DNA of 64,000 nt from Octopus sinensis (Eukaryota). A program made the position numbers and the translations under genes. A model generated the notes under the pieces. The model was not told the DNA's origin. It searched no databases and saw only the letters and a program-made list of their open reading frames with translations. Below, piece by piece: positions 43,667 through 64,000 of the stretch (positions are counted from its first letter, which is position 1; every line of letters begins with the position of its first letter). Location: NCBI RefSeq assembly GCF_006345805.1, contig NC_043023.1:3224001-3288000 (forward strand). Direction: 5' to 3'.

Positions 43667-45024
43667 ATACCTATATTAGCTTTGTTTCATTTATATACTC
43701 ATGCTATATTTAAGGCTTTGTTGTTTTTATGAGGGGGTAATATTATTCATTGTTATTGTGGTGCTCAGGATATTTGAGATATTAAAGGAGTTAGGTATAA
43801 TTTACCTTTCGCTAGGATTATTCTTCACATTTCGAATATGGCGTTATGTGGGTTTCCATTTTTAGCTGGGTTTTATTCAAAAGATTTGATTATTAAAATT
43901 TTATTGAGTAGAGATATAAATATGTTGATTGGTATATTTGGCTTATTTGGGGTGTGTTTAACTATATTATATTCAATACGTATATCTATGTATGTAGTAT
44001 GAGGAGATGTAAAAAGAGGAGTGTATGAAAATATGGAGGATATGTGTGTGTGTGTGTGGTCCCCCTAATTTAGTATTTCAGCAAAAGATATCACTACAAT
44101 TAGTTCTAGGCTTAGAAATAAGTCCTGGGGTCAATTTGTTTGAAAAACCCCAGTCAAATTGCTGAAAGAAGTAGAAGCACATCTATGTGGGCGTAATATT
44201 ATTCATTGTTATTGTGGTGCTCAGGATATTTGAGATATTAAAGGAGTTAGGTATAATGTCCCCCACCCCACCCGCCATACACCTCTGAATTTCTTTCCTC
44301 ATATCGTCCAGAAAAATTAATATTCTTTTAAACGAAATTTGCAACAAATATGCTTCAGATGTTGTAGATTATAATTAGATTGAAATCTATTCTAAAAAAA
44401 AAAAAAAAAATTGATATGTTTGCACACACACACACACGCAGATATAACATTTTTTATCAAAACTTTAAGTTTCAATTCATGATGTGTATGTAATTAGGTA
44501 TGTGTGTGAGCCCACAAATTTTGTTAACGTATTAAATTCTGATATAATTTCACCTTCACAATCCGAATGATATTTGTAGAAAATTTCATCAAAGAAATAT
44601 CCATTTCTCCAAAAGTTATGAGGAAATAAAGCTGACTGATGTGTATTTTCCAAAACTTTTCACCCCACCCTCATAAAACATTTTCACAACAAATTCCAAA
44701 ATATCCATTAATATCCATTTGTGAGAAAGTTATGAGTAAAGAAAGGTGTGTGATTTAAGGGAGATCTGCCTGTTGTTTCTAACACATCCCATTCTTGTTT
44801 CTTCCTCACTGTAACATGTATTAATGTTTTTCAATAGTTTTATTCCCATAAAAACATTTATGCTATTAAAAACAAATTAGTTTGAAAATTTGATTTTTGG
44901 GGGGATTCTCGTTTAAGTACCCCATATAACCACTCATAACCTTTTTACTTTTGGAATTTTTTTAAAATTCAGTACATTTTCAGTAAAATTTTTTAAAATA
45001 GTTTCTTTTCTTTTTATCTTTCAG

Positions 45025-45076
45025 AAACTAAGTTCCTTTTTTGAAACTTCCCTTTGCATCAAGCCACAACTACAAG
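45025..45076 (+). other. Probable 5'UTR exon of the small membrane-protein gene
   Basis: Long polypyrimidine tract plus TTTCAG acceptor, AAG|GTATGT donor, no ATG. Confidence 0.5.
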
Positions 45077-47110: not shown

Positions 47111-47287
47111 TATATAGTATTTGAAATAGTTAAGAATAAGATCTCCACTGCCAGAGTCTCGACCATAAATCTATTAAAGAGTGACTGATGATATTGTGAC
47201 TGTTTGTTTTTCTCAACCTGACCAGCAGTGGACCCTGGGTTATAAGCCTTGTTAGCTTACAGCTTTTGAAACTTATTTTTTCAGATC

Positions 47288-47333
47288 ATGGGTATTTGGA
47301 ACTTGTTCTGCTGTATGTTTGCAATATTTGTCG
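47288..47333 (+). CDS. Coding exon 1 (signal peptide MGIWNLFCCMFAIFV) of a small single-pass membrane protein
   Basis: Acceptor TTATTTTTTCAG ending at 47284, ATG at 47288, hydrophobic stretch, phase-1 donor G|GTAAGT. Confidence 0.75.
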
Positions 47334-47978
47334 GTAAGTTTTATTTTAATTTTATTTTTTCCATAACTTATTTTTGTTAAGGCAAACTTAGTCAAGAGCA
47401 CAGAGGTCTGGAATAGGTCACTCACATAAGGAGGATTTTCTTTGTTTGGACAGGGATTTTTCCAATTTTGTTTTTAGCAGAGCTTTAGAAATGATGCATT
47501 TTATGGAAGAAAATTTAGAAGTTTTTGATTTTCCATCACAATCCAACTTATAAATTATCTACCTCATTAACAAATTATATACAGAACCTCAGGTCCCAAA
47601 ACATTCCCTATATTCTACCCTGGTGAATTAACAGTGAGCCCTCACACCCACCCACCCCATACAACACTAATCTTGGCACTGTGTATGAGAATCATCCACT
47701 ATCTTTCAAAACCACAATCCCTCATCATTTAATAAATTTTCAGATGTAATCCTCTTTATCTTGTAGTTTTGACATTTTGATGATGTGATTGTTTATTTTT
47801 AGACTGACATTGTAGGGTAGGTGTGAGAGGGTGGATGTGGCTACTTCAAACATAAAACAGATATGGCTGGTTTAATCCTTTAGCAATCAGATTACTGTGA
47901 AATATAATGTTCTTTTATTCACCTTATTTTGAATTATATCATCTTAAAATCAAACATTTTTGAGTTCATTTTTTACAG

Positions 47979-48017
47979 GTTTGACAAATGCATATACTGA
48001 TGAAATCACCGAAAGTG
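47979..48017 (+). CDS. Coding exon 2 (39 nt, GLTNAYTDEITES)
   Basis: Acceptor TTTTTTACAG, donor G|GTAAGT, phase 1-1 and in frame with exons 1 and 3. Completes the signal peptide (..GLTNA). Confidence 0.75.
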
Positions 48018-48609
48018 GTAAGTGGATTAACAAACCTTTTCTCTCCAAGACATTACCTTTTCAATTCTGTCTTGTATTTCTTTCCCTTAACTCATAACTT
48101 TTAGCCAATCTTTTGATTTTTGATTTCTTTAAATTTCTAATTTGACCTTTGAGAAAGGCTAAAGAGCCAAAAATGCACATCAGGGAATGTACTGCAACAG
48201 TGGTTTTCGACCAGGGTCATGATGGTTTGTGGGGGTCCATATAGGACTGACACCTTCAAGTTTGTTATGGATCCAACAAGCCACAGCATTGTGGTGAACT
48301 CCATTCCATGCATTGGCAAGGCTTCTATTGCTTCATGGCCCTCCTAGCACTCAGGTAATGCTCACCTCTCTCACCCACCTTTCAACAAACTGATTGCAAG
48401 GCAGCCCTTACTTCTCCCCCCTGATTTTCCTCTTTAAGTGAAACCTGAAAAAGATTATTAAGGTTTTGACAAAAAGACAACTGCCGGTCTTTAGCCCTTT
48501 CAGCAATGTCTACTATATGATCCCCTTTGCCCTGGGCCTCAAGCAAATAAAAACTGGTTGCATTTCCTAGTTGAAGGAAAGTAGAGGGGCCATCTTCACA
48601 AGGGACTCA

Positions 48610-48880
48610 GCTGATAGTTACTCTTTTACTTCTTTCAGTCATTCGACTACGGCCATGCTGGAGCACCGCCTTTAATCGAGCAAATCAACCCCAGGACTTA
48701 TTCCTTGGAAGCCTAGTACTTATTCTATCGGTCTCTTTTGCCAAACCGCTAAGTTATGGGGACGTAAACACACCACCATCAGTTGTCAAGCGATGTTGGG
48801 GGGACAAACACAGACATACAAACATATACACACACATACATATATATATACATATATACGTTGGGCTTCTTTCAGTTCTG
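48610..48880 (-). mobile_element. SINE family A (3' part)
   Basis: Homology to the other copies. Confidence 0.8.
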
Positions 48881-49149
48881 AAAGGTGGAAGATTTTAATT
48901 CAGAACTTCTGAAAACCAAATATTTGTACTCAGAGCCAGAGCTGGTTTCAGCCGGGTTGGTATCAAAAGGGTTAAATATAACAAAGGATTTAGTAAAATA
49001 ACTTAGTTATCATTAAGCTAGTTTTGGGAACATAAACTGTGACTAAGGTTTGGTGGAAGATTTTAATTCAGAACTTCTGAAAATCAAATATTTGTACTAA
49101 AGAGCCAGAGCCGGTTTCAGCCGGGTTGATATCGAAAGAGTAAATTTGC

Positions 49150-49560
49150 AGATTTTGGCACAATGCTAGTAATTTCAGGGGTGGGGCTTATTATATCGAC
49201 CCCCAATGCCCAACTAGTACTTACTTCATTGACCTCAAAAGGGTGAAAGGCTAAGTTGACCTCAGTGAAATTTGAGCGCAGAATGTAAACAGGTATCAAA
49301 TGCTGCCAAGCATTTTGCCTGGCATGCCAATGGTTCTGCAATGGTTTCAAATTTTGGAACAAATCCAGCAATTTTAGCGGGGAGAGGGTAAGTTGATTAC
49401 ATCGACCCCAGTGCTCAACTAATAATTATTCTATTGTCCCTGGCAGGATGAAAGGTAGAGTAGACTTTGGCAGATTTTGAACTCAGAACATAAAGATGGA
49501 CAAAATGTTGCTAAGCATTTTGTCTGGCATGCTAACAATTCAGCCACCTCTCTGCCCTCC
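49150..49560 (-). mobile_element. Two degenerate SINE family B copies
   Basis: GATGAAAGG and ATCGACCCCAGTG motifs. Confidence 0.65.
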
Positions 49561-49585
49561 TAATTAATAATAATAATAATAATAA

Positions 49586-50140
49586 ATGCCCTGATGCAGT
49601 CCCAGGCAGTGGCTCTCATGACTTCTGATCTTAACTGATTGCAAGTGTTATCATGTACATTGTTTTGTCTTGGTACAAAAGATGGGCTACAGCAAATATT
49701 CTGCTCAATACCACAGATTTGCTTGTCAGTTGTTTGACGTTAACCAGTTGAGCATGTCCCTTAGTGGCTGACGATATGTGCATCTCTGATCACGAGCAGA
49801 GGTAGTGGGGGAGCATCATAGCCATGTGTTGAAAGGAATTCTTTGAGGGTTGAATATTTCACCTCTGGAAACATGGGTGTTTCATTCAACATCCTTAAAC
49901 AATCCTTATTCAGGGACCTTTTGAGTGGGATGGGTTACTCGACCAGAAGAAAATTCTAACTGGGTCCCACCTGCAAGGTCATGCGCTGTTTATCTTGATA
50001 TGAGATCACCATGTCGCGCACACATGGTTGTGAGGCATGTGCCTGGTGTACCTTTATCAGACGGGTAGTCATGATGGGTATATTGGGCTTTGTATATTTT
50101 ACCCCAGTGTCACCTTGATGGCATGTACTGCTCTCTCACT
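49586..50140 (-). mobile_element. Unclassified ~560-bp interspersed repeat
   Basis: Third copy of the 12027-12580 family. Confidence 0.8.
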
Positions 50141-50168
50141 CAACAACAACAACAACAACAGCAACAGC

Positions 50169-50206
<38 letters not shown>

Positions 50207-50522
50207 AAGCAGCAGCAGCAGCAGCTGCACATATATTTTCATAATATTTACACAAATTCAAAGTTTGTAACTTGACAATTTCAAGGTTTGCTGTATTAGA
50301 TTTTCTTTTCTGTTTTGAATTGATAAGTTTTGATAATAATCCCTGGCGGGATATTTTTATAGTTCAAAGAATGGATTAGTTAGTTTCATTACCTAGGATT
50401 ATCTGTCAATTGTACTATCTAATTGTTATAGAAATGAGTGACATTTTCCAGTTAATCATGAAGGTTGAATTTGAAGAGAAAAATATTATTAATTGCAAAA
50501 ATTGACAGAAGCCCTGCTTTTG

Positions 50523-50730
50523 CTATATAACCCTTCTAAATCATGGACTGATCTGTTGACCTTGCATTTCTGTGATAGAATAAGAAAGTCAAACCCCGTT
50601 GCATATCCTATATAACCCTTCTAAATCATAGACTTATCTGTTGACCTTGCATTTCTGTGCTAGAAGAAGAAAGTCAATCCCCTTTGCATATCCTATATAA
50701 CCCTTCTAAATGATGGACTGATCTGAAGGG
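50523..50730. repeat. 85-bp tandem repeat, ~2.4 copies
   Basis: CTATATAACC anchors at 50523, 50608 and 50693. Confidence 0.9.
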
Positions 50731-50776
50731 GATTAGCTAATCTTTTAAATATAGTCGTCTCGGATACTGGTGTGTG

Positions 50777-51339
50777 TTAACCTATTCCTTACCATATTTC
50801 TGTTGAAATACATTGCTTTTGTATGAAGGTGCATGGCTCAGCGGTTAGAGCATCAAGCTTACGATCGTGAGGTTGTGAGCTTGAATCCCGGACCAGGCTG
50901 CATGTTGTGTCCTTGAGCGAGACACTTTATTCCACGTTGCTCCAATTCACTCAGCTGTAGAAATGAGTTGCAACGTCACTGGTGCGAAGCTGTATCGGCC
51001 CCTTTGCCTTTCCGTTGGATAACATCAGTGGTGTGGAGAGGAGAGGCTGGTATGCATGGGCGACCGCTGGTCTTCCATAAACAACCTTGCCCAGACTTGC
51101 GACTAGAAAGGTAACTTTCTATGTGCAATCCCATGGTCTGTGTTGTGACCGAAGTGGGTTCCTACCGACCGTATGAATAAATTTTGAAAATTATGAAGAT
51201 TTTAGTAAAATAACCTTGTCATTACCAAGCTAATGTGTGCAACATAGTGTTACTGGAAATTTTGATGGGGACTTTTCCTTTAGATCACTTTAAATTGGAA
51301 TTTGTATAATAGAAACGAAAGTATTTTTTAATAGGTTAA
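50777..51339. mobile_element. piggyBac-type MITE interrupted by a tRNA-derived SINE D (~50823-51165)
   Basis: TTAA-CCTATT...AATAGG-TTAA. The insert has head GAAGGTGCATGGCTCAGCGGTTAGAGC and core GTGTCCTTGAGCGAGACACTT. Confidence 0.7.
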
Positions 51340-51411
51340 TATGAAAATGGTCAAGCTTGGGAGATATTACTATTTTTTATTAAAAACAAAGGCTATATAT
51401 TTTTGTATTTA

Positions 51412-51670
51412 GGAATGGTCATTTTGCCTGTTTAGCCAATAAAAACACACGCACTATATATTTGGTGTTACTTTGCTTCAGCGTTATTTAATTTTTACAT
51501 TAATCTTAATCTTATTTCAGCCAGAGTTCTTTCGTCACACTCCTGTGACCTCATCAGTGGTCCTTTGCTTTCTTCTTTCTTATTTGTGTGTCTCTCCTTA
51601 GCAACGGTCAGCCATTTTGTATTTTGTATCTCTATTTTTTATTGGCTAAACTGGCAAAATGACCATTCCG
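51412..51670. mobile_element. Inverted-repeat-bounded element carrying a minimal hammerhead core (51521-51560, minus strand)
   Basis: ~35-bp inverted ends GGAATGGTCATTTTGCC.GTTTAGCCAATAAAAA. Internal CCA-CTGATGA-GGTCACAGGAGTGTGAC-GAAAGAACTC-TGG. The same insertion is present at 63868-64000. Confidence 0.65.
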
Positions 51671-51770
51671 AAATACAACAATATCTGTTTCAGCACACGA
51701 TTTCACATCAAAAATCTTGTAAAACAAATATATAAATGTAGCTGTATATTTTATTGTTCATCAATTGCAG

Positions 51771-51922
51771 ATCCAAAAACTGAATCTCATGGATCAGGAA
51801 TCTCCACTATACTTAAGTTTGTCGGAATTGGTTTTGGCTCACTTGCAATGTTAGTCGGACTCGTTTCCTACTGCTGCCTAAAGTACAAGAATAGGGAAAA
51901 TTCTGTTCAGCCGCAATGTTAG
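51771..51922 (+). CDS. Last coding exon: transmembrane helix plus short tail ((D)PKTESHGSGISTILKFVGIGFGSLAMLVGLVSYCCLKYKNRENSVQPQC*)
   Basis: Phase-1 acceptor TTGCAG, ~21-residue hydrophobic helix followed by basic residues. Frame, splice site and stop are conserved in the paralog at 63605-63765. Confidence 0.8.
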
Positions 51923-52464
51923 AAAACTTTCACCGATTGCATTGGCATGGTTGGATTTTAAAGAATTTATATCCATATTTTTTATATATCATCATCATTG
52001 TCATTAGTTTAGCAGTGTCTTTTCAAGATTCTGCTACATCTTTTGGCTAAAACGACTGAGAATTAAAAAATTTTAAAGCTATTAACTGTCTGTTTATCAA
52101 TTTATGACAACAACTAATAACCTTTTTTAAGTTTTTGGAATTAAAAAAAGCTCAGTACATTTTTAGTAAAATATTCAAAAATACAGTTTTTTAATTTTAT
52201 ATTTCAGCTTATGTAGAGAAACTAAGTTCCTTTTCTTGCTTGTATTTCCCAGTTGGTTTGGTAAAACTAAAGCTTTTGACCCAGTCATAAAAAAAAAATA
52301 GTGTAATAGGTGTAAGTAGTACCCAAGACTTTTTACTTCAAGTTTCAAAGGAAACATTGCTGGCCTAATTTTGTTATATTTATATTCAGCAGCATAAATA
52401 CATAAAAACAGAACAGGCACACACACACACAGACAAGATCTTTTATTATGTATAGATAAGTAAC

Positions 52465-53526: not shown

Positions 53527-55589
53527 CTGGGGTTCTCAACGATTTTTTATCTACGGATCCCTTTGATTGCTATTTTATTTTGCTGGAGCCCCATAAACAT
53601 TTGGTGTTTAATAACAAGTTTTATAGGAACTTTTTTCAAAATTCCTCTTTTGTTCTTCCCCCATTAACTTGTGTAGGTCGAACTATGTAAATTGTTAGAG
53701 AAAGAAACCTAGCTGTTTCTTGCAATACATACCAATACATACATCTAAAACAGGGGTTCTCAACCATTTTTTATCTATGGACCCCTTTGATTATGATTTT
53801 ATTCTGGTGGACCCTTGTAGCAATTCAATGTTTAAAACTAGTTTTACACAAACTTCTTTCAAAATTCTTGTTTTGCTTTTTCACCCATTAACTTGTGTCG
53901 GTTGACCTATGTAAGACATCAGAGAAAGAAACCTAGCTGCTTCTTACAGTAAATACAACTAAAGTACAATTTTTTCATCATCATCATCATTGTTGTCATT
54001 TAACGTCCGCTTTCCATGCTAGCATGGGTTGGACGGTTTGACTGTGGGCTGGCAAACCAGATGGCTGCACCAAGCTTCAGTCTTGATCTGGCAGAGTTTC
54101 TACAGCTGGATGCCCTTCCTAATGCCAACCACTCTGAGAGTGGACCCTTAAACCAGATGGCTGCACCAAGCTTCAGTCTTGATCTGGCAGAGTTTCTACA
54201 GCTGGATGCCCTTCCTAATGCCAACCACTCCGAGAGTGGACCCTTAAACCAGATGGCTGCACCAAGCTTCAGTCTTGATCTGGCAGGGTTTCTACAGCTG
54301 GATGCCCTTCCTAATGCCAACCACTCCGAGAGTGGACCCTTAAACCAGATGGCTGCACCAAGCTTCAGTCTTGATCTGGCAGAGTTTCTACAGCTGGATG
54401 CCCTTCCTAATGCCAACCACTCTGAGAGTGGACCCTTAAACCAGATGGCTGCACCAAGCTTCAGTCTTGATCTGGCAAAGTTTCTACAGCTGGATGCCCT
54501 TCCTCATGCAAACAACTCCGAGAGTGGACCCTTAAACCAGATGGCTGCACCAAGCTTTAGTCTTGATCTGGCAGAGTTTCTACAGCTGGATGCCCTTCCT
54601 AATGCCAACCACTCTGAGAGTGGACCCTTAAACCAGATGGCTGCACCAAGCTTCAGTCTTGATCTGGCAAAGTTTCTACAGCTGGATGCCCTTCCTCATG
54701 CAAACAACTCCGAGAGTGGACCCTTAAACCAGATGGCTGCACCAAGCTTCAGTCTTGATCTGGCAGAGTTTCTACAGCTGGATGCCCTTCCTAATGCCAA
54801 CCACTCTGAGAGTGGACCCTTAAACCAGATGGCTGCACCAAGCTTCAGTCTTGATCTGGCAAAGTTTCTACAGCTGGATGCCCTTCCTCATGCAAACAAC
54901 TCCGAGAGTGGACCCTTAAACCAGATGGCTGCACCAAGCTTCAGTCTTGATCTGGCAGAGTTTCTAGTTGGATGCCCTTCCTAATGCCAACAACTCCGAG
55001 AGTGGACCCTTAAAATACTACCACAGATCCCCATTTAACTATTTTTTACATGTGGACCTCTTTTGATTAATATTTTGTTCTGGTGGACCCCTATAGCCAT
55101 TTGATACTTAAAAACTAGTTTTATAGAAATTTCTTTCAAAATTCCTATTTTGCTTTTCTCACATTAACTTGTGAAGGTGGAACTCTGTAAAAAGTTAGAG
55201 AAATAAACCTAGCTGTTTCATGCAATTCATACATCTAAAGCAAAGATTTATTATGGACCCTTAAAATACTACACCAAATCCTCAATTTACTATTTTGCTT
55301 GCATAGACCCCCTTTGTTTATTATTTTATTCTGGCGGGTTCCCATAACCATTTGATGTTTAAAAACTAATTTTTCACCCATTAACTTTTGTTGGTTGAAC
55401 TCTGTAAAATATTAGAGAAAGAAACCCAGCTGTTTCTTACAATGTATACCAATACACACACCCAAAGCAAAATTTTTTGAGGGTCCCTAAGATGCTATTG
55501 GATCCCCAATTTACTGTTTTCTTACATGGATCTCCTAAAATCTTATCTGGACACTCAGGGGTCATGTGGACCCTGTTTGAGAACCACTG
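53527..55589. mobile_element. hAT-type non-autonomous element with internal duplications
   Basis: TIRs C(T)GGGGTTCTCAAC / TTTGAGAACCACTG and 8-bp TSD CTTTAAAG / CTTTCAAG. Hosts an RTE fragment and the 96-bp array. Confidence 0.7.
54055..55012. repeat. 96-bp tandem array, 10 copies, with a 192-bp higher-order repeat
   Basis: Period 54055->54151. Units 4-9 alternate GCAGAG..TAATGCCAACCACTCTG and GCAAAG..TCATGCAAACAACTCCG. Confidence 0.97.
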
Positions 55590-61542: not shown

Positions 61543-62300
61543 CATCATCATCATCATCATCATTGTTTAACGTCCCTTTTCCATGCTAGCACAGGTTGGA
61601 CAGTTCGACCGGGTCTGGGGAACCAGGAGGCTGCACCAGGCTCCAATCTGATCTGGCAGTGTTTCTACAGTTGGATGCCCTTCCTAACGCCAACCACTCT
61701 GTGAGTGTAGTGGGTGCTTTTTATGTACCACCGGCACAGGTGCCAGGGGAGGCTGGCAACACCCACGATCGGTTGGTGCTTTTTACGTGCCACCGGCATG
61801 GAAGCCAGTCAAGCTGGTGCTGGCATCGTCCATGTACTGATGGTGCTTTTTATGTGCCAGGGGAGGCTGGTAATGGCCACGATTGGTTGGTGGATTTTAC
61901 GTGCCACCGATGCGGAAGTCAGTCAAGGCGGCGCTGGCATCGGCCACATACAGATGGTGCTTTTTATGTGCCACCAGCACAGAAGCCAGTCAAGACGGCG
62001 CTGGCATCTGCCATGTATGGATGGTGCATTTTACATGCCACCGGCACAGGTATTGCCACTACAATCCCCATTTGATTTTTGATACTGATCTACTTGACTC
62101 AATGGGTCTCCTCAAGCACAGCAGGTCACCCTACGATCCAAGGTAAGCACAGCAGGCCGTCCTGCGATCCAAGGCACTTTTGAAGGGCTGGGGCTTCTAT
62201 GTGAAGCTGGTGCAGGAAACAACCATGAACTCACATTATTTGTCGGGTCTTCGCAGTCATAGCATATCTCCAGAAGTCTCGGTCTTCCGTTATTGCCTCT
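61543..62300 (-). mobile_element. RTE-type LINE 3' end: ORF2 C-terminus plus modular 3'UTR
   Basis: Minus strand LTEAITEDRDFWRYAMTAKTRQIM*, followed by modules, conserved domain and (TGA)n tail. Confidence 0.75.
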
Positions 62301-63262: not shown

Positions 63263-63604
63263 TTATTGATAAAGCTCTTCCAGTAAATCGCAATGTGCCA
63301 CCAAAATATTGCAAGTGTGTTTTTCTTTTCAGCTCCTTCAGTTTTGTTCCATTTGATTTCAAATTTAGTGTATCAATGTAGTTTTGTCTGTTAATTATAT
63401 AAATGAAATTATTTGTTGTCATAAATTGATAAACAGACAGTTAATAGCTATAAAATTTTTTCAATTCTCAGTTATTTTAGCCAAAAGATGTAGCAGAATT
63501 TTGAAAAGACTCTGTTAAACCAATGACAATGATGATGATATATAAAAAATATGGATATAAATTCTTTAAAATCCAACTATGCCAATGCAGTCAGTAAAAG
63601 TTTT

Positions 63605-63765
63605 CTAACAGGGCTGCTGAACAGAATAATTTCCCTTCTTGAAATATTTGTAGCCGAAGAAAGGGAGTCCGAGAAGGATTGCAGCAAGGATGAATGAGCA
63701 AAAAATGATTCCGACAATCTCAAGTGCACTGAAGGTTCTTGATCCATCAGCTTCAGTTTTCGGAT
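63605..63765 (-). CDS. Paralogous last exon: (D)PKTEADGSRTFSALEIVGIIFCSFILAAILLGLPFFGYKYFKKGNYSVQQPC*. Upstream exons lie beyond the window end.
   Basis: Same phase-1 TTGCAG acceptor, transmembrane helix, stop and 3'UTR as 51771-51922, in inverted orientation. Confidence 0.8.
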
Positions 63766-64000
63766 CTGCAATTGATGAACAATAAAATATACAGCTACAT
63801 TTATATATTTGTTTTACAAGAATTTTGATGTGAAATCGTGTATTGAAACAGATATTGTTGTATCTAGGAATGGTCATTTTGCCAGTTTAGCCAATAAAAA
63901 ATAGAGATACAAAATACAAAATGGCTGACCGTTGCTAAGGAGAGACACACAAATAAGAAAGAAGAAAGCAAAGGACCACTGATGAGGTCACAGGAGTGTG

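Follow-up and report, generated by a model that had tools for sequence, protein, structure and literature searches.

A probable three-exon gene for a small membrane protein in Octopus sinensis, with a terminal coding exon that is hyperdivergent between two inverted copies

We analysed a 64,000-nucleotide stretch of the Octopus sinensis genome (assembly GCF_006345805.1, contig NC_043023.1, positions 3,224,001 to 3,288,000), referred to below as the window and numbered from its first letter. Between positions 47288 and 51922 it contains what is probably an unannotated protein-coding gene of three small exons (copy A), whose predicted product of 78 amino acids looks like a surface or secretory-pathway microprotein with a single membrane span. 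The terminal coding exon of this gene recurs in inverted orientation at the end of the window (copy B), and the two copies differ far more within the coding part of this exon than in the DNA on either side of it. This paralog, with its exon-limited hyperdivergence, is absent from the earlier note on the locus, which had been made from the letters alone, and is the most informative feature of the locus.

Divergence between the two copies is concentrated in the terminal coding exon

Comparison of the locus with the rest of the window revealed that positions 51536-52118 recur in inverted orientation on the minus strand (64000-63408), where the match is ended by the window edge. The shared segment begins with 235 nt of intron 2, spans the complete coding part of exon 3 and continues for 196 nt past the stop codon. 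In copy B, the corresponding features on the minus strand are an intron flank reaching the window end (63766-64000; 230 of 235 nt identical to 51536-51770), a terminal coding exon with stop (63605-63765) that encodes DPKTEADGSRTFSALEIVGIIFCSFILAAILLGLPFFGYKYFKKGNYSVQQPC and has the same acceptor and stop position as copy A as well as a 9-nt in-frame insertion, and a 3′ untranslated region (UTR; 63408-63604) homologous to the flank after the stop of copy A. Exons 1 and 2 of copy B would fall past position 64000.

The intron flanks of the two copies differ at five of 235 positions (97.9% identity) and the flanks after the stop at 12 of 196 (93.9%), whereas the coding block shows 40 differences in 152 nt plus the 9-nt in-frame indel (73.7% identity; Fisher p = 1.8e-13 for the difference counts of coding block versus flanks). 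The borders of the divergent block are sharp: its first difference lies at 51775, 5 nt past the acceptor, and its last at 51916, 4 nt before the stop, while the 56 nt directly before the acceptor contain no difference at all. As controls, we used pairs of two other repeats of the window, a 600-bp repeat and a short interspersed element (SINE). Here, the ratio of divergence in the hottest 150 nt to that in the rest was 1.4-2.1, compared with 8.0 for the pair of copies A and B.

Only the proposed frame, of the six possible across the block, is open in both copies. Within it, the terminal exon of copy B shares 44% amino-acid identity with that of copy A, and the conserved positions comprise DPKTE at the exon start, G-S, V-G-I-x-F, G-L, a Lys/Tyr-rich basic stretch after the helix, S-V-Q and a C-terminal Cys. 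The best 19-residue window has a mean Kyte-Doolittle hydropathy of 2.67 in copy B versus 2.09 in copy A. When 40 random substitutions were introduced into copy A by simulation, the frame stayed open in 13% of cases, and an open frame together with an equally hydrophobic helix was obtained in 0.1%. The borders of the hotspot, the retention of frame, stop and helix, and the behavior of the control pairs together indicate that the block is a translated exon with the borders given in the earlier note. On the strength of this comparison, we are quite confident that the terminal exon truly codes for protein and that the gene to which it belongs is duplicated and evolves fast. Selection has very probably kept the frame, the stop and the membrane helix while nearly half of the residues changed.

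We also considered the terminal exon as part of a high-copy transposon and rejected this idea, since the window contains the segment only twice, as opposed to at least 15 copies of the SINEs found in intron 2. Close to exon 3, intron 2 carries a 49-nt inverted repeat (51397-51445 and 51636-51684; 94% identity, arms 190 nt apart) that resembles a miniature inverted-repeat transposable element (MITE). Copy B contains the right arm of this repeat as well (63852-63900).

Rates of change and possible selection

By the Nei-Gojobori method, the nonsynonymous divergence (dN) between the two copies is 0.41 and the synonymous divergence (dS) 0.18, resulting in a dN/dS of 2.2, with a flank divergence of 0.04. 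The coding exon changes about eight times faster than the surrounding DNA, and dN alone reaches about ten-fold the flank rate (p = 3e-15). Replacements are evenly distributed over ectodomain, helix and tail, and the differences fall 18/13/10 on the three codon positions. Diversifying selection on the whole mature protein appears to be the simplest reading of these values. Two results stand against it: dN compared with dS alone gives p = 0.13, so that a dN/dS above 1 is not significant, and synonymous (p = 0.004) as well as third-position sites (p = 1e-4) are likewise more diverged than the flanks. Because of this excess, part of the contrast could stem from flanks that are homogenised or constrained or from a local mutational hotspot, and exon-targeted hypermutation may be an alternative source of the divergence of the mature part. 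On the whole, the rate pattern makes a recognition-type role in co-evolution with a partner more likely than a conserved regulatory one.

The three-exon gene model

The predicted exons 47288-47333, 47979-48017 and 51771-51922 join in phase 1 throughout and yield a coding sequence of 237 nt, from which the product MGIWNLFCCMFAIFVGLTNAYTDEITESDPKTESHGSGISTILKFVGIGFGSLAMLVGLVSYCCLKYKNRENSVQPQC (78 amino acids) can be read directly. The three exons with their coordinates, their phase, their splice signals and the peptide had all been proposed before, and our direct reading reproduced them exactly. Exon 1 (47285-47333, plus strand, as all features of copy A) contributes 46 coding nucleotides from an ATG at 47288, which lies in a good context (atcATGg) and is preceded by an in-frame TGA 18 nt upstream. 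It ends in the donor G/GTAAGT and encodes MGIWNLFCCMFAIFV plus the first base of a Gly codon, the predicted n- and h-region of a signal peptide. After intron 1 (47334-47978; 645 nt, largely unique apart from a short piece of a repeat at 47747-47911) follows exon 2 (47979-48017), a 39-nt phase 1-1 micro-exon with the acceptor ttttttacag/G and the donor G/GTAAGT. It encodes (G)LTNAYTDEITES, which would comprise the c-region of the signal peptide, the cleavage site TNA/Y and the start of the ectodomain. A signal peptide split over small exons by phase-1 introns is typical of secreted and type I proteins.

Intron 2 (48018-51770; 3753 nt) is full of SINE and repeat copies. The coding part of exon 3 (51771-51922; 152 nt including TAG), which is the block that is hypervariable relative to copy B, begins after the acceptor caattgcag/A and is predicted to encode the remaining ectodomain DPKTESHGSGISTILK, the transmembrane helix FVGIGFGSLAMLVGLVSYCCL and the tail KYKNRENSVQPQC. 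Behind it lies a 3′UTR at 51923-52118, delimited by the match to copy B, which runs out at about 52112-52118. An ATTAAA is located at 52062, 140 nt past the stop of copy A.

Splice sites were ranked with an approximate metazoan matrix. On the plus strand, the coding donors of exons 1 and 2 fall into the top 0.4-0.7% of 3836 GT sites, with the exon-2 donor in the top 0.4%, and the exon-2 acceptor ranks second of 3326 AG sites. The acceptor of exon 1 is in the top 1.6%. In the 10 kb upstream of exon 3, no other open first exon starts with ATG and ends in phase 1 at a donor scoring 3 bits or more; exon 1 alone has these properties. The earlier note had allowed for extra phase 1-1 exons in 48018-51770, but a scan of intron 2 gave no credible candidate; the only sizeable one (48639-48884) lies inside a SINE copy, has a weak donor and was rejected.

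To obtain a measure of chance, we enumerated all ATG-initiated three-exon models on both strands with splice sites at least as strong as those of the candidate. Exactly one of the 48 resulting models, the proposed gene, shows the layout of signal peptide plus transmembrane segment, defined as a hydrophobic stretch near the N-terminus followed by a hydrophobic window of 19 residues and, after that, basic residues. At least one such model occurred in two of 300 (0.7%) order-4 Markov sequences of 64 kb, a figure that is optimistic because the thresholds were chosen post hoc, after the candidate was known. Since about 0.7% per 64-kb window would give many chance models in a genome-wide scan, the enumeration and the null result taken alone are suggestive and not decisive. 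They are, like the splice scores, independent of the comparison of copies A and B. Considering both lines of evidence, we regard the three-exon model of an unannotated protein-coding gene as probable, and splicing of exons 1 and 2 to exon 3 is likewise probable as judged from these signals.

The predicted product

Over 10 residues, the h-region of the putative signal peptide, LFCCMFAIFVGL, averages 2.96 on the Kyte-Doolittle hydropathy scale, and the candidate cleavage site T-N-A/Y obeys the -3/-1 rule. The predicted ectodomain of 24 residues has a net charge of -3 and contains eight Ser/Thr, and the mature product would include the stretches YTDEITESDPK and TESHGSGISTILK. A hydrophobic helix of at least 19 residues is present in both copies. 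The tail of copy A carries a net charge of +2 and that of copy B contains KYFKKGNY, a charge distribution that fits the positive-inside rule. AlphaFold2, run on the single sequence, placed helices at residues 3-27 and 36-74 with a mean predicted local distance difference test score (pLDDT) of 69.

The earlier note had described a type I layout with a GxxxG motif in the helix and a juxtamembrane Cys. The hydrophobic helix and the charge distribution agree with this description. GxxxG and the juxtamembrane Cys (Cys-Cys in copy A) are both missing from copy B and are hence not features of the family. Our best reading of the product is a type I protein whose signal peptide is cleaved, in appearance a microprotein of the surface or the secretory pathway. 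The role of a receptor accessory subunit or surface marker that had been suggested for it is purely inferential.

We propose the following picture. The hydrophobic stretch at residues ~6-17 would act as a cleavable signal peptide cut after Thr-Asn-Ala20, leaving a mature type I protein of about 58 amino acids. This would consist of an acidic, Ser/Thr-rich ectodomain of 24 amino acids that is possibly O-glycosylated, a single transmembrane helix of 21-23 residues and a basic cytoplasmic tail of 13-14 amino acids with the conserved Cys at its end. The gene would be one of at least two members of a small family restricted to its lineage, arranged tail to tail about 11.3 kb apart, and the mature part of the protein would diversify while retaining only general membrane-protein properties. 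Such a surface or secretory-pathway protein could be engaged in a fast co-evolving interaction with a pathogen, gamete or self/non-self partner; a conserved housekeeping accessory subunit would not be expected to evolve in this fashion.

Alternative explanations

A number of observations weigh against the gene model and the topology proposed here. The matrix used to score the splice sites was approximate and not trained on octopus, and even with it the acceptor of exon 3 is only moderate (top 6.7%). Neither tblastn nor blastn detected a second copy of exons 1 and 2 in the window, so that their support consists of splice scores, uniqueness and a post hoc null simulation. The ATTAAA of copy A, a candidate poly(A) signal, is disrupted in copy B, in which no canonical signal of this kind is conserved. 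The n-region MGIWN has no basic residue, and the N-terminal segment could therefore be an uncleaved anchor. Finally, there was no match to the product in collections that include annotated Octopus proteins, although a query of 50-78 residues would miss members as diverged as copy B.

How do these points bear on other readings of the locus? The terminal exon could be real and the upstream model wrong, with other or additional 5′ exons or with translation of an unspliced open reading frame (ORF) of 87 (copy A) or 90 amino acids (copy B), starting at ATG 51659 or 63877 and giving a protein with a C-terminal membrane anchor and no signal peptide. In both copies, 37 codons upstream of the acceptor are open and the ATG is kept, all five differences of the intron flank fall within this upstream extension, and exons 1 and 2 have no independent comparative support. 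The openness in copy B is uninformative, however, because the flank is 98% identical, and the 37-residue extension shows no recognizable feature. Moreover, the final 56 nt of the intron flank show no divergence, which then jumps to 26% from 5 nt after the acceptor onwards, and this fits an exon border at 51771 and not a continuous coding region. Exon 1 as the sole compatible start exon in 10 kb and the near-best splice sites of exon 2 argue for the upstream model as well, and we consider it quite unlikely that this model is wrong. A more radical possibility is that there is no gene at all: the two copies would be a non-coding segmental duplication or low-copy repeat with a mutational hotspot, and the signals would be chance occurrences in AT-rich sequence, picked by the earlier reader among many possible combinations. 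This view can draw on the lack of any homolog for a product known from sequence alone, on a frame that stays open in 13-19% of random-substitution simulations, on the raised synonymous sites and the codon-position counts of 18/13/10 with no third-position bias, on the MITE-like inverted repeat that makes up part of the shared flank, and on the many chance models expected genome-wide at ~0.7% per 64-kb window. It leaves unexplained why the borders of the hotspot coincide to within 5 nt with the predicted acceptor and to within 4 nt with the stop codon, why the indel is a multiple of three and why only the proposed frame is open in both copies. Nor would it account for a helix that was kept or improved though 22 of 49 aligned residues were replaced (joint probability ~0.001), for the conservation of DPKTE, SVQ and the terminal Cys at the two ends, or for the lack of a comparable divergent block in the other repeats of the window. 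The evidence for exons 1 and 2, moreover, is independent of the comparison between copies. We judge the absence of a gene to be improbable.

The main alternative to the cleaved type I topology keeps the gene model and assumes an uncleaved signal anchor. The product would then form a two-helix hairpin whose two ends lie in the cytoplasm and whose loop of 24 residues is luminal or extracellular. Besides the n-region, the long first helix predicted by AlphaFold2 (residues 3-27) is in line with such a hairpin, and so are sub-threshold matches of the two hydrophobic segments to TM1-TM2 (the first two transmembrane helices) of tetraspanins (Pfam E = 0.021; CD9 E = 3.4). These matches, at 14.9 bits compared with a cut-off of 32.1, are far below the family threshold, an h-region of about 12 residues is short for a membrane span, and a small/neutral -3/-1 site follows it in T-N-A/Y. 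The hairpin therefore receives a low probability from us, and we retain the cleaved type I protein as the preferred topology.

Searches for relatives and comparison with known families

The earlier note had not recognized the family, and our searches bear this out, since no relative was found in protein collections including those of Octopus, in Pfam or in PDB. The 78-residue peptide gave no match at E ≤ 10 in a word-indexed search of proteins that include transcript-derived ones of Octopus and annotated ones of O. sinensis and O. vulgaris, and the alignment of both exon-3 sequences gave none in the same kind of search. Pfam returned only sub-threshold matches for the full peptide, the mature part and copy B, and the PDB sequences yielded only CD9 at E = 3.4. 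For the genomic ORFs around both terminal exons, and for a reverse transcriptase fragment elsewhere in the window, no exact match is on record. Two JGI metagenome scans with patterns from the conserved flanks gave no match, a result of little weight since cephalopod DNA is not expected in these collections. In the literature, the peptide strings were absent and nothing relevant on orphan or hypervariable families of cephalopods was found. A full HMMER scan of 1.84 billion representatives returned a single match, P0001, a tandem-repeat protein of 966 amino acids (E = 2.7e-24). We rejected it as a repeat-inflated artefact, in which one stretch of 13 residues with the pattern "VSxCCxxYKN" was matched 13 times. 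As this case illustrates, whole-sequence scores of HMMER can be inflated by repeat proteins when the query is short.

Each of the families that we compared with the product, namely FXYD proteins, glycophorins, tetraspanins and DAP-type adaptors, fails in its defining features, and the product belongs to none of them. FXYD proteins (phospholemman, the gamma subunit of Na,K-ATPase; PF02038) are similar in their size of ~60-100 amino acids and their several small exons. Some of them have a cleavable signal peptide, as is predicted for the octopus product, and further similarities are the short ectodomain, the single helix with Gly and the basic juxtamembrane tail that includes a Cys. The F-x-Y-D motif is absent from YTDEITESDPKTESHGSGISTILK, and PF02038 is not among the Pfam matches at E ≤ 10. 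FXYD proteins also evolve slowly, unlike the octopus family, and the Gly and Cys features of copy A are not conserved in copy B. Glycophorin A and other small mucin-like type I sialoglycoproteins resemble the product in their short acidic Ser/Thr-rich ectodomain, their GxxxG helix (as in copy A) and their short basic tail, and glycophorins evolve rapidly under pathogen pressure. They differ in that copy B lacks GxxxG and the octopus ectodomain is much shorter; the Glycophorin_A model (PF01102) scored 11.8 bits for copy B, against a cut-off of 30.1, and did not match copy A. For tetraspanins (PF00335; 14.9 versus a cut-off of 32.1 bits), the product offers two hydrophobic segments only and not four helices. 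Signalling adaptors of the DAP10, DAP12 and FcR-gamma type are defined by a charge within the helix and by an ITAM or YxxM in the tail; here, neither helix contains Asp, Glu, Lys or Arg, and the tails KYKNRENSVQPQC and KYFKKGNYSVQQPC show neither a YxxL/I pair nor YxxM. The single-helix regulatory micropeptides sarcolipin, phospholamban, myoregulin, DWORF and sarcolamban are also very small membrane proteins, of a kind that ORF-length filters and annotation pipelines often overlook. They are encoded by single exons, tail-anchored, and have conserved helices and neither signal peptide nor ectodomain, and there is no sequence similarity.

A further parallel is one of pattern and not of homology. 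The conopeptide (conotoxin) genes of cone snails are small mollusc genes with a signal-peptide exon, as is predicted for the octopus gene, and a last exon for the mature product. Between paralogs, this last exon is hyperdivergent, introns and UTRs are much more conserved, and synonymous change in the mature region is raised too. The hyperdivergence of the mature exon relative to intron and UTR flanks was measured here between copies A and B as well. Conopeptides are secreted toxins with a Cys framework and have no membrane anchor, whereas the octopus product has retained a transmembrane helix together with its basic tail, and copies A and B have no conserved Cys pattern apart from the C-terminal Cys.

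A candidate 5′ exon and the sequence context

A candidate non-coding 5′ exon lies upstream of exon 1 at 45025-45076 on the plus strand, with an acceptor ctttcag/ of 5.79 bits (top 0.3%) and a donor CAAG/gtatgt of 5.26 bits (top 0.55%). It contains no ATG. Its start is overlapped by a low-copy block (44928-45040, plus strand; block X) that occurs a second time at 52105-52235, exactly where the homology between copies A and B stops. The two occurrences share ~71-76% identity and an identical core, AGAAACTAAGTTCCTTTT. The end of the homology and the recurrence of block X there fit an ancestral duplication unit from ~44.9 kb to ~52.1 kb, and block X may be a boundary of this unit or a promoter-proximal element. 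It lends slight backing to the assignment of 45025-45076 to the gene. Comparison of the window with itself found no copies of exons 1 and 2 after the downstream block.

The window has a G+C content of 40% and is dominated by satellites, minisatellites and SINEs. A 107-bp satellite occupies 2184-7961 (54 copies, 96% identity), and a GC-rich (~60%) minisatellite of 67 bp is found at 36300-39656 (50 copies, 96% identity), where it creates spurious minus-strand ORFs of up to 1076 amino acids; degenerate relatives of the latter are located at 34732-35706, 61740-62049 and 20637-21104. A 96-bp tandem repeat at 54054-55014 (10 copies, 95% identity) contains a spurious ORF of 322 amino acids. Copies of the ~600-bp repeat lie at 49563-50158 (in intron 2), at 12009-12605 on the minus strand and at 31690-32290, each next to an (ATT)n run, and the last is directly followed by an assembly gap of 100 N (32291-32390). 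The SINE, with at least 15 copies in the window, is represented in intron 2 at 48618-48877 and 50826-51180, and the intron also contains a tRNA-like SINE head. At 11270-11716 on the minus strand, we identified a fragment of a jockey-like reverse transcriptase of the non-long-terminal-repeat type, 73-82% identical to O. sinensis and O. vulgaris proteins, a match that by itself assigns the window to an octopod or near relative. Scans of the window with Rfam and for tRNAs (ARAGORN) called nothing, and a scan for bacterial promoters and terminators, irrelevant to a eukaryote, remained at chance level.

Significance

Both ORF-length filters and annotation by homology systematically overlook small membrane proteins encoded by several exons, and cephalopod genomes are rich in repeats and have been annotated only thinly. 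The locus described here illustrates that a comparison of paralogs within one window can back such a gene from DNA alone. In other animals, a hyperdivergent coding exon between near-identical non-coding flanks is the mark of molecules caught up in arms races, among them venom peptides, pathogen receptors and proteins of gamete recognition. It is conceivable, if rather doubtful at present, that octopods carry a novel family of membrane-anchored surface microproteins in which the mature exon has diversified faster than its surroundings, synonymous sites included. If true, exon-limited hypervariability of the conopeptide style would act here on a cell-surface tag instead of a secreted toxin. In an animal that lacks adaptive immunity, the family could be used to recognize pathogens, gametes or self versus non-self, and its existence could also indicate an exon-targeted mutational or conversion mechanism. 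If confirmed, the locus would add an orphan gene family to cephalopod biology and would provide a compact system of about 150 nt in which to ask whether selection alone or a targeted mutational process drives such divergence.

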